DNA of 64,000 nucleotides from Macrostomum lignano (GCA_002269645.1 NIVC01000230.1:186001-250000), one strand, 5' to 3'; positions 1 through 15,000 are shown, numbered from the stretch's first letter. Notes: generated from the letters alone by a model not told the origin. Numbers and translations: made by a program.

Positions 1-3000
1 CCAAGGGAGCCATTGTGCGCTCGGCTGGGAACCCGGCCACGCCCGAGTGCGTGCGGGACAACTGGGCCCGGATCTGCGACTTCTCTGTGGGTTCCGGCTG
101 TCTGGCTGGTGTGTCTGTCTGTCTGTGTCTGTGTCTGTTTGTGTCTGTCTGTCTGTCTGTCTGTCTGTGTGTGTCTGTCTGTGTGTCTGTCTGTCTGTGT
201 GTGTCTGTCTGTCTGTGTGTGTCTGTCTGTGTGTGTCTGTCTGTCTGTGTCTGTCTGTCTGTGTCTGTCTGTCTGTGTCTGTCTGTCTGTCTGTGTCTGT
301 CTGTCTGTCTGTGTCTGTGTGTCTGTCTGTCTGTCTGTCTGTCTGTGTCTGTCTGTCTGTCTGTCTGTCTGTCTGTCTGTCTGTCTGTGTCTGTCTGTCT
401 GTGTCTGTCTGTCTGTCTGTCTGTCTGTCTGTGTCTGTCTGTCTGTGTCTGTCTGTCTGTGTCTGTCTGTCTGTGTCTGTCTGTCTGTCTGTGTCTATCT
501 GTCTGTCTGTGTCTGTGTCTGTCTGTCTGTCTGTCTGTGTTTGCCTGTCTCTGACTTTGTCTGTCTGTGTCTGCCTTTCTGTTTCTGTCTGCTTCTGTCT
601 GTTTCGTACCATGCTGTATTCAACAGTCACTAATCACTGAACTGATAAAATGTTTGCTTCAACAATTTTATCGCTCGTTTAATCCACATTTCAGGACTCA
701 GATCGACCGTCTACTATCGAGGAGAGCACCGGGAACTTCGTCTCGGTGCTGCAGAAAGTCGACCAGGAGAACCAGCAGCCGCAGCCGCAGCGGGAACTGA
801 AAAGCTTGGCAGATCTGATTGGCTACCAGGGCGAACCGTCTGAAATGGCCTACGGTTCCACAGAGGTCATCCTCTACGCCTTGGGGGTCGGCGTGTCCAC
901 CAGGCATAAGAACCACCTGCGCTTCCTCTATGAAGGTTGGTGTCTGTGTCTGTCTGTTTGTCTGTCTGTCTGTCTGTCTGTCTGTCTGTCTGTCTGTCTG
1001 TCTGTCTGTCTGTCTGTCTGTCTGTCTGTTTGTCTGTCTGTCTGTCTGTCTGTCTGTCTGTCTGTCTGTCTGTCTGTCTGTCTGTCTGTCTGTCTGTTTG
1101 TCTGTCTGTGTGTGTGTGTGTCTGTCTGTCTGTCTGTCTGTCTGTGTGTCTGTCTGTATGTCTGTCTGTCTGTCTGTCTGTGTTAGTGTATGTGTGTTTG
1201 CGTAGACTCTCCGTCGGTTTAAAACCCTCGTTAGCGGGACCTTTCGATTACATGGACCCTTTAAGTGGACCACTTTAAATTTCCTCGATGGGAAGTACAG
1301 AGAGGGTTTATCTTGACTGACTGCATAGTCTGAAAGGCAGCCATTACTGTGGCCAAAGTCCCTCTACTTAAAGTAGTTTAGATTTTAAGTATTGAGTATT
1401 TTAGTTTACAAGGACCTTTAACACAGTCCACCCAAACCACATCGCTGAGGTCCACCTAACCCGAAAACAGACAAATTTCATACATACATAGTGTATGTTT
1501 TGTTTGTATGAAAACTTATTTTTTATGATATAGCTCTTTAAAATGCGTGTTTAAGCACATTGTGGCATTTTTGAGTTGCAGAAGCAAGCTTACTAAACAG
1601 GCCGAAGTGATTGGAATGTAAAATAAAATTGAAGTTTCTGCTACAAACGAAGCTCCGATGTAGCCCATAATGACTAAAAATTCACGAGATGGTTTTATTT
1701 ATTACTTGTGGTTTCTGAAACAAAACTGTTCACTGATATTCCTGTCGCTATCATACTTGGAATAAATGCTTCATCAAGTGTTGATTTTAGAGAACCTAGA
1801 TTGAAGGCTATACATGACTACATAATTTCTCATGCTGCATTTGCAGCATTGCTTAATTTAAGGAGACATAAAGACAACAGCCTTGCTTACAGCACGGACT
1901 CCTAAAATAGTTTGTGTGCTTTATATTCAAACGTTTACAGCTTCGGCAACCGATAGGATAGGGCTGGATAATGAAACTTTAAAAGCCGAACCATCCTGAC
2001 TGAGGTCCAAGCAAACCCCAAAGCTCATCAGCCAATCCTGTGCTTAAACGGACAGTCAAGAATGGGGTGGTTAAACTTTCATTCCTTACTGTCCGTCCGT
2101 TTGAACGTTGGTCATTTCCCTCTCTCCCTCCGAAGGGCTCTTATTGGTCTGTAGCTGGCTTAATCATCAAGGTCGAGGGTCTGAAATAGAGGGTCAACGT
2201 AAACATCTTCCTAATCACAAAAACAGACACCAATTCCCAACCTCAAACAAGACTTCAAATTGAATTAGTTGGCCTCACAAGTTGGTTCTGCCAACTGGTT
2301 GTCCTTAACACGCCAGCATGCAGAAAAAAAAGCCCCAAGCTAGTAGGCGTTTCTACGTTGAAAGGATTATCAAGTGCACGAAAAAGAAGCTCTACATAAA
2401 GTGGAAAGGATATTCAAGGTGAGTTTCAAAAGACTTATTCACCACTGCACTCTGTTTATTATATATACTAAGAGTTGTTTCCATACGGCCATATCGGTTC
2501 GGCTAATAAACAGTGCTTTCATATTTTAGCAATCAAAATTCTTGGGAGCCACGAAGCAACATACCAACAAGTGTGATTCAAAGTCTGCATTCATCTTGCG
2601 GTAAGAATTTTTAGTCATCACGTGTAATAATCTTATTAAATAATTGACCGTCTAACTTGTGTCAGATAAAAAATGACAATCTAACTCTCTTTCAAAATCT
2701 ACCAAACTCAAAACATTCCAGAAAAATGCTTCCCGCCGAAAGAGCAGCAGAAAACGATGACGGTAGGAACTCCTGACTTAACTGTTACTTAGATGTATGC
2801 CACTTCATTCCGCAATCGAATCTTAAGGCACGATTTCATTCGAAAGCATTCCAATCTGAGAGGTGGGGTCCAGCTAAACCTTCATTGAATGTCGTTCACA
2901 TTGACTGTGGGTGCTTCAAGCATCGACTGCCAAACATACTTTCAGACATGGGGTCCAGCTAAACCCTCATTGAATGTCGTTCACATTGACTGTGGGTGCT

Positions 3001-12000: not shown

Positions 12001-15000
12001 TGTTCTAAAGGTCCGTTTAAACCTGGTCTACCTAACAACATAGTTCGAATAGTTTAATTTACTCGAATTGAAGACCTTTTGAAATTAAAAAGGCAACAGT
12101 ATTTTCCAGGCGTCTCAAATTAAGCTGGTTCCCCGATTTTCTAACCATAACTAATTGGTCCACCTAACGCATTGTCAGAACAACGGTCTATGTAACCACA
12201 CATACACTAGTATGTCTGTCTGTCTGTCTGTCTGTCTGTCTGTCTTAGTGTCTGTCTGTCTGTATGTCTGTGTGTCTGTCTGTATGTCTGTCTGTCTGTC
12301 TGTCTGTCTGTCTGTCTGTCTGTCTGTCTGTCTTAGTGTCTGTCTATCTGTATGTCTGTCTGTCTGTCTGTGTGTCTGTCTGTCTGTCTGTCTGTCTGTG
12401 TGTCTGTCTGTATGTCTGTCTGTCTGTCTGTCTGTCTGTCTGTCTGTGTGTCTGTCTGTCTGTCTGTCTGTCTGTCTGTCTGTATGTCTGTCTGTATGTC
12501 TGTCTGTCTGTCTGTCTGTCTGTCTGTCTGTATGTCTGTCTGTCTGTCTGTCTGTCTGTCTATGTGTCTGTCTGTCTGTCTGTCTGTATGTCTGTCTGTC
12601 TGTTTGTCTGTCTGTCTGTCTGTCTGTCTGTCTGTTTGTCTGTCTGTCTGTCTGTCTGTCTGTCTATGTGTCTTAGTGTCTGTCTGTCTGTCTGTCCATC
12701 ACTTCAGCCCAGTCCACCCCCCCCCCAGGAAGCGAGAACTTCTCCGTCCTACCCACATTCGGTGTGATCCCAGCATTCAAGTCCAGCCTGTCCTTCCTGG
12801 TGTCCGGCGTGTCTGGCCTGATCGACCCGGCTCGAATCCTGCACGGCGAGCAGTACATCGAGCTGCTGCGGCCCTATCCCACCGAGGGCCGCCTGCGCAC
12901 CGAGTTTACGGTAGCCGACGTGATGGACAAGGGCCGCGGCGCGGTGATTGTGCTGGACGCCAAGACTGTGGATTTGGCGAGCGGAGAGGTAATCTACCTG
13001 AGCCAGTAATCTACCTGAGCCAGTAATCTACCTGAGCCAGTAATCTACCTGAGCCAGTAATCTACCTGAGCCAGTAATCTACCTGAGCCAGTAATCTACC
13101 TGAGCCAGTAATCTACCTGAGCCAGTAATCTACCTGAGCCAGTAATCTACCTGAGCCAGTAATCTACCTGAGCCAGTAATCTACCTGAGCCAGTAATCTA
13201 CCTGAGCCAGTAATCTACCTGAGCCAGTAATCTACCTGAGCCAGTAATCTACCTGAGCCAGTAATCTACCTGAGCCAGTAATCTACCTGAGCCAGTAATC
13301 TACCTGAGCCAGTAATCTACCTGAGCCAGTAATCTACCTGAGCCAGTAATCTACCTGAGCCAGTAATCTACCTGAGCCAGTAATCTACCTGAGCCAGTAA
13401 TCTACCTGAGCCAGTAATCTACCTGAGCCAGTAATCTACCTGAGCCAGTAATCTACCTGAGCCAGTAATCTACCTGAGCCAGTAATCTACCTGAGCCAGT
13501 AATCTACCTGAGCCAGTAATCTACCTGAGCCAGTAATCTACCTGAGCCAGTAATCTACCTGAGCCAGTAATCTACCTGAGCCAGTAGTCTGCCTGAGCCA
13601 GTAATCTACCTGAGCCAGTAATCTACCTGAGCCAGTAGTCTGCCTGAGCCAGTAATCTACCTGAGCCAGTAATCTACCTGAGCCAGTAATCTACCTGAGC
13701 CAGTAGTCTATCTGAGTACTGAGTACTGTCTACCGGAATGTCGCCCCAATAATTATCGCCTCCGAAAATCTCCCCAATAAAAATCACTTCAATAATAATC
13801 GCTCCAAAAATCCCCAATAAAAATCACCAAAAAGCGCCTCAATACGAGCTAAATGTCGCCCAAATAAAAATCGTCTCAAACAGAATCGCCTCAATAATAA
13901 TCGCCCTAATAAAAATCTCCCCAATAAAAATCGCCCCATAAAATCTCCCCAAAAAGAAATACACCAGTAAAAATTGTTTCAATAAAAATCCCCTTAATAA
14001 AAATCGCCCTAATAAAATCGCCTCAATAAGAAGCGCTCCAATAAAAATCGCCTCTGAAAATCTCCCCAATAAAAATCGCCTCGCCATAAACCTCCCCAGC
14101 CGGTCTGCCTCAACCAATTCGTAGTCTACGCTGGCGGAGCTGGCGGTTTCGGCGGCCATCGCGACTCAAAATCGCCCAAGCCGCTGGCCGAGCCGCTGGC
14201 GCAGCCTCGAGCTCCTGACGCCATCGTCGAGGAGGCGACCGCCATCGATCAGGCCGCTCTGTACCGGCTGTCCGGGGATCGAAACCCGCTGCACATTGAC
14301 CCCGCCTTTGCCGCTATGGGCGGCATGGACCGCCCCATATTGCATGGCCTCTGCACTATGGGCTATGCGGCCAGGCATGTGCTGACCAGGTACGATTGGG
14401 CGCATGGCTTCCTGTGAGGGCTCCCTTCCCTTCTCCCTTCCCTTCTCCCTTCCCTTCTCCCTTCCCTTCTCCCTTCCCTTCTCCCTTCCCTTCTCCCTTC
14501 CCTTCTCCCTGCCCTTCTCCCTTCCCTTCTCCCTGCCCTTCTCCCTTCCCTTCTCCCTGCCCTTCTCCCTGCCCTTCTCCCTGCCCTTCTCCCTTCCCTT
14601 CTCCCTGCCCTTCTCCCTTCCCTTCTCCCTGCCCTTCTCCCTTCCCTTCTCCCTGCCCTTCTCCCTTCCCTTCTCCCTGCCCTTCTCTCTTCCCTTCTCC
14701 CTTCCCTTCTCTTTTCCCTTCTTCCTTCCCGAGCCGATATGTATCGAAAACACAAATAACTAAGTCAAACCAGCCGATATGTATCAAAAACACTAATAAC
14801 TAAGCCAAACTAACCAATTCGCAGCTACTGCGACGACGATCCGGCCAAATTCCGCGCGATGAAGGTCCGCTTCACGAAGCCGGTGGTGCCCGGCCAGACC
14901 GTCTGCACACGCATGTGGCGGGCGGAGCAACCCGCTGGCCGGGTGCTCATCGAATGCGTTGTCAAGGAGACCGGCGAGGTCTGCCTGAGTGGCGGCTACG

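Follow-up and report, generated by a model that had tools for sequence, protein, structure and literature searches.

Introduction

CryptonV elements are tyrosine recombinase (YR) DNA transposons that insert specifically into microsatellites, according to the brief account of them in PMC8869645, which cites Kapitonov & Jurka (2012). The element analyzed here occupies positions 1184-12209 of a 64,000-nucleotide stretch of the genome of the flatworm Macrostomum lignano (GCA_002269645.1 NIVC01000230.1:186001-250000), hereafter referred to as the window. It is likely a non-autonomous, deleted copy of a Crypton-like transposon that encodes a chromodomain, zinc fingers, and a YR, behaves like CryptonV, and integrates site-specifically into a microsatellite. 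As reported for CryptonV in that account, the copies lie in microsatellites (4/4 in the flatworm and 3/3 for a pufferfish relative). The host of CryptonV is a cnidarian in the brief published description, with which alone the comparison is made, whereas the present host is a flatworm, with relatives of the element in fish, molluscs, echinoderms, and beetles. The CryptonV literature accessible to our searches contained classification mentions only, in which termini and domains are undescribed. A preliminary description of the window had proposed an undescribed type of transposon, a proposal left unsupported by the CryptonV record (PMC8869645): a microsatellite-specific YR transposon is, as far as that short account goes, a known type. 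Strong terminal inverted repeats (TIRs) and an N-terminal chromodomain, both found here, are unreported for Cryptons in the searchable literature, where we found neither a chromodomain- or TIR-bearing animal Crypton nor any Crypton in Macrostomum.

The canonical Cryptons (CryptonF, CryptonS, CryptonA, and CryptonI; Goodwin 2003; Kojima & Jurka 2011, PMC3212892) resemble the M. lignano element in having a single YR gene, no reverse transcriptase, no target-site duplication (TSD), and non-autonomous deletion derivatives. They are described as having no TIRs or long repeats, only terminal direct repeats of 4-6 bp (PMC3212892), whereas the M. lignano element has 24-bp TIRs with subterminal repeats, and its direct repeats are the microsatellite arrays, not a fixed 4-6-mer. 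Canonical animal Crypton proteins, as described, are also without the zinc-finger module and the chromodomain that are both present here. DUF3504 is a CryptonA-derived domain, and none of 71 aligned members of the M. lignano protein family matched it at E ≤ 0.01.

Starship/Enterprise captains of fungi (e.g., Kirc, PMC8092012) likewise combine a YR with a zinc finger and a chromodomain, and some of these elements are described there as TIR-bearing and site-specific. According to the same source, captains have a DUF3435-type YR and a C-terminal chromodomain, whereas the chromodomain is N-terminal in the M. lignano protein and DUF3435 matched 0 of the 71 family members at the same threshold. The likeness is thus confined to domain architecture. 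Starships are cargo-bearing and measure tens to hundreds of kb, and the available portions of PMC8092012 and PMC13465315 do not mention a microsatellite target. Endogenous nimaviruses of crustaceans offer a further parallel, with YRs of C2H2-plus-SAM-like composition that enter telomeric repeats; compared by description only, they differ in being viral genomes of ~200-300 kb (PMC10871703).

Results

Copies of the element at unrelated loci

The preliminary description had taken the sequence for a mobile element without a visible catalytic domain. Both points were borne out by three full-length copies (L001, 8,778 bp; L002, 38.4 kb, 8873-47284; L003, 15.9 kb, 1770-17655), which have the same TIRs as the window copy, lie at unrelated loci, and retain the predicted catalytic domain. 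The copy analysis rests on these four reachable M. lignano copies. Outside the flanking arrays, the flanks were unrelated between copies in all pairwise comparisons, and similarity between copies stopped at the TIRs and arrays. The neighboring genes also differed by copy, one being an MFE-2 intron, another an Ank/ARM gene, and so on for the others. Unrelated flanks exclude segmental duplication as the source of the copies.

Up to position 11924, the window copy matched L001 with 98.4% identity; there it skipped 2,732 bp before resuming in the 3' subterminal region. The deletion took the rest of the last coding exon (residues ~541-1184, comprising the SAM-like/core-binding domain, the YR catalytic domain, and a C-terminal tail) together with ~800 bp beyond the stop codon. 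A 1-nt frameshift in exon 5 of the window copy also leads to a premature stop, and homology to the full protein runs on in another frame to 11926. The window copy is non-autonomous because the 2.7-kb deletion removed the recombinase; it is a dead internal-deletion derivative retaining both ends. Identity among copies was 97-98% across the 5' 2-4 kb, and the 3' 1.4 kb of the window copy was 98.2-98.4% identical to all three others. The coexistence of near-identical autonomous and deleted copies suggests recent activity, and the element family thus appears to have been recently active in M. lignano. A second M. lignano family (P0009) was 45-55% identical.

An 85-bp satellite with three copies of a 390-bp exon (exon 4a) made up 70% of the window element. 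The number of satellite and exon-4a units was the main difference among the four copies: two exon-4a segments were present in L001 (open reading frames [ORFs] 10953 and 12265), three in the window copy, nine matches in L003, and 25 matches in L002. This hypervariability may reflect either genuine array expansion or an assembly effect.

Gene structure and protein domains

The gene is spliced, as the preliminary description had noted. It has five exons on the + strand with GT/AG borders and consistent phases (Table 1), and an annotated M. lignano protein of 1184 aa matched the window translation with 96-98% identity. A word-indexed protein search with the 112-aa zinc-finger region gave no match. 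An exhaustive HMMER search with the zinc-finger region, similar to a check suggested in the preliminary description, returned 1243 matches and led to the best full-length match, P0002 (PAA76011.1; M. lignano, 1184 aa, 96% identical), encoded at locus L001. P0002 shares the chromodomain, linker, and zinc-finger module of the window copy and then runs on for ~650 more residues. The full-length copies encode one 1184-aa protein with a chromodomain, a zinc-finger module, and a predicted YR.

The chromodomain, which the preliminary description had recognized, is encoded by the first two exons and scored 32.1 bits against Pfam PF00385 (cut-off, 25.1). Its best PDB matches were HP1, CBX, and SUV39H1, and residues F12, W30, and Y33 align with the positions of the HP1 aromatic cage. 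The zinc-finger region (CxxC..H..H, GDFHHN, LPCxxCxGFF) is followed by the YR domain in hundreds of animal proteins as well as in the full-length copies, in agreement with the resemblance initially noted from its motifs. No Pfam family covers this double zinc-finger module (C2H2-like, GD(F/Y)xHN, CCHC-like), which is found 3-9 times in tandem in some predicted proteins of other animals, e.g., P0001 (Elysia marginata, 4571 aa) and P0003 (Umbra pygmaea). The C-terminal tail (VHVKWSEEEDAAF...) looks Myb/SANT-like by eye, and Pfam and PDB searches with it gave no match.

Predicted tyrosine recombinase

Homologs of the C-terminal 430 residues were found in fishes, molluscs, an echinoderm, and beetles, each annotated as uncharacterized. 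Pfam Phage_integrase (PF00589) matched 10 of the 71 aligned family members, with a best E value of 2e-7. PDB sequence searches with the zinc-finger region, the 439-aa C-terminal region, and the family profile were uninformative for a YR, so that the fold was visible only by structure-based search. Of the AlphaFold (AF2) models built from the family alignment, that of the two-domain region reached a pLDDT of 91.6 and that of the catalytic domain 90.8, and the top Foldseek matches in the PDB were exclusively tyrosine recombinases (XerA, the XerD C-terminal domain, IntI, and lambda Int, with Cre lower), with probabilities of up to 1.00. Residues R239, K288, R360, H386, and Y395 were near-invariant and fall within Xer-like motifs (NRRRxxE, RGKR..VPL, TKLRK, LGH, and F-Y-R). 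Judged by the PF00589 matches in its relatives, the AlphaFold and Foldseek results, and these conserved residues, the protein of the full-length copies is a tyrosine recombinase, and its R-K-R-H-Y set is intact in all three.

In the 8.8-kb full-length copy L001, no ORF of at least 90 aa was found besides the gene exons and antisense ORFs of 98-112 aa within exons (the latter not Pfam-scanned), and none was of transposase or reverse-transcriptase size. By ORF survey and Pfam analysis of the protein, the full-length element has no reverse transcriptase or RNase H, unlike DIRS, Ngaro, PAT, and VIPER.

Termini, subterminal repeats, and junctions

The TIRs and the inverted subterminal motif that had been noticed in the preliminary description were both present. 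The two 24-bp TIRs are identical at 21 of 24 positions, and a degenerate TIR pattern (≤3 mismatches) occurred at these two sites only in the window, with 0.00 expected. The inverted motif CGTTAG(C/G)(G/T)GGACC lies inside each end (Table 1). Counted from the left end, its GGACC core is found at offsets 54, 71, 84, and 229; counted from the right end, it is found at 49, 196, 223, and 238. The further GGACC/GTGGACC repeats keep the same orientation relative to their own terminus. Half of the ten GTGGACC/GGTCCAC heptamers in the window fall within ~300 bp of the two ends.

The junctions were the same in 4/4 copies and read (GTCT)nGTGT|TAGTG...CACTA|GTAT(GTCT)n. At each of them, 2 to at least 13 perfect GTCT units adjoin the invariant GTGT or GTAT. 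Directly beyond the TIRs stand the 8-bp sequences GTCTGTGT and GTATGTCT, which do not duplicate one another and recur in all four independent copies. The constancy of GTGT and GTAT over four independent insertions marks them as part of the element or of the junction rather than as a TSD, contrary to the preliminary description, which had considered TA or GTGT/GTAT as the duplicated target. TSDs of the hAT (8-bp), TA, TTA/TAA, and 2-4-bp types were rejected upon inspection of the junctions, as no length fits. The flanking repeat is the microsatellite itself, and the element is without a TSD.

The (TCTG)n arrays on both sides of the window copy (947-1181 and 12213-12696) were present as first reported, although they are not strictly uninterrupted: the flanking arrays carry GTGT, GTAT, GTTT, and TAGT variant units. 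In the right array, TAGT units were observed at 12246-12249 and 12334-12337, each with GTAT and GTGT a few units on. TAGT, GTAT, and GTGT are also the variant units that compose the outer part of the left TIR. In the right array they may be footprints that past integration or excision events left behind, or they may hint at descent of the TIR from the repeat.

Microsatellite target and distant relatives

All four M. lignano copies lie inside (TCTG)n, with TCTG on the gene strand each time, and each is flanked on both sides by arrays of 40-600 bp. In 99 kb of non-element sequence, (TCTG)n arrays all had TCTG on the + strand, and away from the element flanks (TCTG)n covered ~0.4% of these 99 kb. 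A relative in the pufferfish Takifugu rubripes (P0191, ~28% identical) is present as three ~12.5-kb copies (L007, L008, and L009) that are 99.5% identical to each other and reside in introns of unrelated genes. Its TIR is only weak, and 3/3 copies have (GT)n on both sides in the same orientation. Targeting of microsatellites by the element, as put forward in the preliminary description, is supported by the flatworm and pufferfish copies together. Paralogs of the host MFE-2 exons were sought in M. lignano for an empty site, and the search returned other species only. Since an empty site was never encountered and the copies available numbered only four, the pre-existence of the microsatellite at each insertion is inferred rather than observed.

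The 99.5% identity of the three Takifugu copies suggests recent activity in the pufferfish as well. In self-alignments of L009 (element, ~1227-13718), a 636-bp periodicity was seen upstream of the YR gene, and an additional 304-aa ORF without a Pfam match was located at 2259-3173. In a metagenomic relative (P0170; L011, ENA ERZ23498500; 33% protein identity), the 3' end of the contig lies within (CA)n, where the sequence breaks off. The 5' region of P0170 holds GTGTATATGTGTT-GTAGACT (GTGTATATGTGTTGTAGACT, L011 28-48), which is very close to the M. lignano left TIR GTGTATGTGTGTTTGCGTAGACT; 0 of 1000 shuffles reached the score, but as the sequence is GT-rich, the match is suggestive at most. On this alignment, a terminal motif may be conserved between the M. 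lignano element and the L011 relative.

Host gene and other features of the window

The exons that flank the window copy encode consecutive parts of a hydratase-2 N-terminal domain, and their homologs are named peroxisomal multifunctional enzyme type 2 (MFE-2; Table 1). With a splice donor GT at 936, an AG acceptor at 12727-12728, and a phase that joins to 935, the element-bearing intron is 936-12728. Minus the element, this intron measures ~767 bp, 724 bp of which (~94%) are (TCTG)n.

Table 1. Features of the element copy in the window and of its flanks
Feature	Position	Strand	Remarks
Upstream host exon, MFE-2/HSD17B4-type gene, hydratase-2 N-terminal domain	746-935	+	Pfam PF22622 profile positions 3-28
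Left flanking (TCTG)n/(GTCT)n microsatellite	947-1183	+	Last unit GTGT at 1180-1183, invariant in 4/4 copies
Left TIR, TAGTGTATGTGTGTTTGCGTAGAC	1184-1207	+	Identical in L001, L002, and L003
Left subterminal repeats	1229-1455	+	CGTTAGCGGGACC at 1229-1241; GGACC cores at 1237, 1254, 1267, 1412; GGTCCAC at 1449
Exons 1-3	2318-2418, 2530-2600, 2722-2762	+	HP1-like chromodomain (residues 14-47) and linker
Internal 85-bp satellite inside intron	2864-10561	+	Interspersed with three identical exon 4a copies
Exon 4a copies (three, 390 bp, identical)	3866-4255, 6617-7006, 8868-9257	+	
Exon 4	10608-11400	+	Acidic disordered region, then first (C2H2-like) zinc finger
Truncated exon 5	11701-11888	+	GDFHHN motif and second (CCHC-like) finger; premature stop at 11886-11888
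Internal-deletion junction	11924-11931	+	2,732 bp equivalent to L001 14651-17382 gone
Right subterminal repeats	11967-12169	-	GGTCCAC at 11968, 11983, 12157; GGTCC at 12010; CGTTAGGTGGACC on minus strand at 12157-12169
Right TIR, reverse complement TAGTGTATGTGTGGTTACATAGAC	12186-12209	-	
Right flanking (GTCT)n microsatellite	12210-12696	+	First unit GTAT at 12210-12213, invariant in 4/4 copies
Downstream host exon, MFE-2 hydratase-2 N-terminal domain continued	12729-12988	+	PF22622 profile positions 41-122

Tandem repeats likewise take up other introns of the same MFE-2 gene. The neighboring intron upstream of exon 746-935 is filled by an element-free (CTGT)n array of ~500 bp (98-602), and a 17-bp satellite (GTAATCTACCTGAGCCA, 43 copies; 12989-13716) begins exactly at the splice donor GT of exon 12729-12988. 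A public M. lignano model, UniRef A0A1I8FQM6 (598 aa, P0015), joins element exons (10608-11400) to the MFE-2 exons from 12729; this fusion is either an annotation chimera or a true exonization of the transposon into a host transcript.

Elsewhere in the window, an intact 1157-aa ORF of a non-LTR retrotransposon with AP endonuclease, reverse transcriptase, and RNase H was identified at 24463-27936 (-), with possibly ORF1-like ORFs upstream of it at 27976-29537 (-). A 331-aa mariner/Mos1-type transposase ORF (61813-62808, +) contains HTH_48, HTH_32, and a partial DDE domain and is probably truncated. Cellular gene fragments, consisting of short-chain dehydrogenase/reductase exons and an F-box protein exon, were found at 48222-48857 (-), 50199-50801 (-), and 36175-36651 (-). 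Micro- and minisatellites, such as a ~2.5-kb array at 44671-47196, abound in the remainder of the window.

Discussion

In YR sites, a 6-8-bp spacer separates two inverted repeats of 11-13 bp, and a circular intermediate has been proposed for Cryptons (PMC3212892), active members of which integrate at a short sequence matching their own terminus (PMC9977147). In the reading that we favor, of a CryptonV-behaving transposon, the YR would excise the element as a circle. The circle joint, TIR(right)-GTAT(GTCT)kGTGT-TIR(left), would be a lox/attP-like site in which two inverted recombinase-binding arms surround a spacer of microsatellite units (predicted junction sequence, ...CACACATACACTA-GTAT(GTCT)nGTGT-TAGTGTATGTGTG...). 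Integration would be a conservative, orientation-specific crossover between the circle spacer and a genomic (GTCT)n tract. A crossover within GTCT units would explain the lack of a TSD, the repeat in direct orientation on both sides, and the pure GTCT units at the junctions. Two positions would fit the crossover, namely, a GTCT spacer outside the fixed GTGT and GTAT ends or the middle of the mismatched 8-bp spacer. The TIRs may represent core-type half-sites left just inside the repeat, as in an integrated lambda prophage, and the subterminal GTGGACC repeats are candidate accessory ("arm-type") sites, with the double zinc-finger module perhaps acting as their reader. The HP1-like chromodomain is predicted to bind H3K9- or H3K27-methylated chromatin and could plausibly tether the recombinase there. 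Chromodomains tether the integrases of chromoviruses to chromatin in a similar way. Having kept both ends, the window copy would be movable only in trans, by a full-length copy.

This arrangement resembles lambda-type integrases, Cre/loxP, and FLP/FRT in fold, in catalytic motifs, and in the lox/attP core geometry of the predicted circle junction. The likeness to lambda would extend to the integrated form, with core half-sites as short inverted repeats inside a direct repeat and with subterminal repeats that resemble arm-type sites. The M. lignano gene differs in being eukaryotic and intron-containing, and its crossover region would be a tandem repeat of variable length.

Several observations weigh against the favored reading. 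Regarding the recombinase, a Pfam scan of the 1184-aa protein recovered Chromo only, with the M. lignano protein falling short of the Phage_integrase threshold. The Foldseek E values were modest (2e-3 to 1e-2, TM ~0.45), and the catalytic set is R-K-(K)-R-H-Y, in which a lysine replaces the first histidine of the canonical R-K-H-R-H-Y. Regarding the termini, 24-bp TIRs are atypical for Cryptons, which are described as without terminal repeats (PMC3212892), and the invariant GTGT and GTAT separate the TIRs from any crossover sequence shared with the target. The microsatellite is not an inverted repeat, so the mode of target binding is hard to explain. The four copies revealed no empty site, no excision footprint, and no circular form. 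Finally, the relatives L005 (metagenome) and L006 (sea cucumber) showed neither a flanking microsatellite nor a convincing TIR; as for L004 (scallop), their boundaries could not be defined because they are single copies.

The alternative that survives best, which we nevertheless consider unlikely, is a YR transposon that carries (TCTG)n with it or from which the array grows out, so that only a very short GTCT-like target is needed and the element is not truly microsatellite-specific. The missing empty site would agree with such a transposon, as would the finding that nearly all (TCTG)n in the 99 kb flanks an element, the left array of L001, which is just ~48 bp long, and the circle model itself, whose junction would carry (GTCT)k. 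The neighboring intron, however, has an element-free array of ~500 bp, and array lengths and variant units vary freely among copies and sides. The fish relative, moreover, sits in (GT)n. (GT)n is an abundant microsatellite of vertebrates that pre-exists such insertions. The report of CryptonV as microsatellite-specific, in the short notice in PMC8869645, also speaks for true targeting.

Clearly less probable is a DDE cut-and-paste transposase, hAT-like or Tc1/mariner-like, that acts on the TIRs in trans, with the chromodomain-YR gene as cargo or resolvase. TIRs of 24 bp with subterminal repeats have a classical class II look, TAGTG would fit the hAT terminal consensus, and MarCry-1_FO, in which a TIR-bearing Mariner with a TA TSD encloses a Crypton, provides a precedent (PMC3212892). 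Such a transposase would be expected neither to leave the element without a TSD nor to be followed by 8-bp flanks that, unlike a duplicated target, are the same in four independent insertions. The strict orientation relative to an asymmetric repeat (4/4 flatworm and 3/3 fish copies) and the microsatellite flanks of the fish relative despite its weak TIR also argue against it, and the full-length copy has no sizeable second ORF, only the short antisense ORFs that were not domain-scanned. Lastly, an immobile multi-copy or domesticated cellular gene family whose copies, flanks included, arose by polyploidy or segmental duplication would suit a gene with introns and an annotated model in a species with a recent genome duplication, but is rendered exceedingly improbable by unrelated sequence beyond the arrays, different neighbor genes, similarity that ends at the TIRs and arrays, and 97-98% identity across the 5' 2-4 kb among copies, one of which has a deletion typical of non-autonomous derivatives.

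A broader proposal can be advanced only tentatively, and we think it rather doubtful at present. The CryptonV-behaving element and its relatives might form a separate animal YR lineage outside the sequence-defined Crypton groups. Such a lineage would operate in a lambda/lox-like manner, with TIR cores, arm sites read by zinc fingers, a microsatellite attachment site, and a histone-methyl reader for steering or tethering. It would be broadly distributed, with members in fish, molluscs, echinoderms, insects, and flatworms, and would still be active in M. lignano.

To our knowledge, Crypton transposition is among the least understood mobility mechanisms of eukaryotes; we are aware of no biochemical work on it and of only a few defined ends and active copies. 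M. lignano is a laboratory animal in which transgenesis is feasible. The combination of defined lox-like ends, an orientation-specific simple-repeat target, near-identical autonomous and deleted copies, and a tractable host makes the circle-intermediate model directly testable. For annotation, the element yields chimeric gene models with its host gene, and the "uncharacterized" zinc-finger-YR proteins of many animals are probably transposon proteins. If the favored reading is true, the element would provide a eukaryotic case of a site-specific integrase sparing genes by landing in microsatellites, and its chromodomain would have been recruited by a recombinase other than the retroviral-type integrases.

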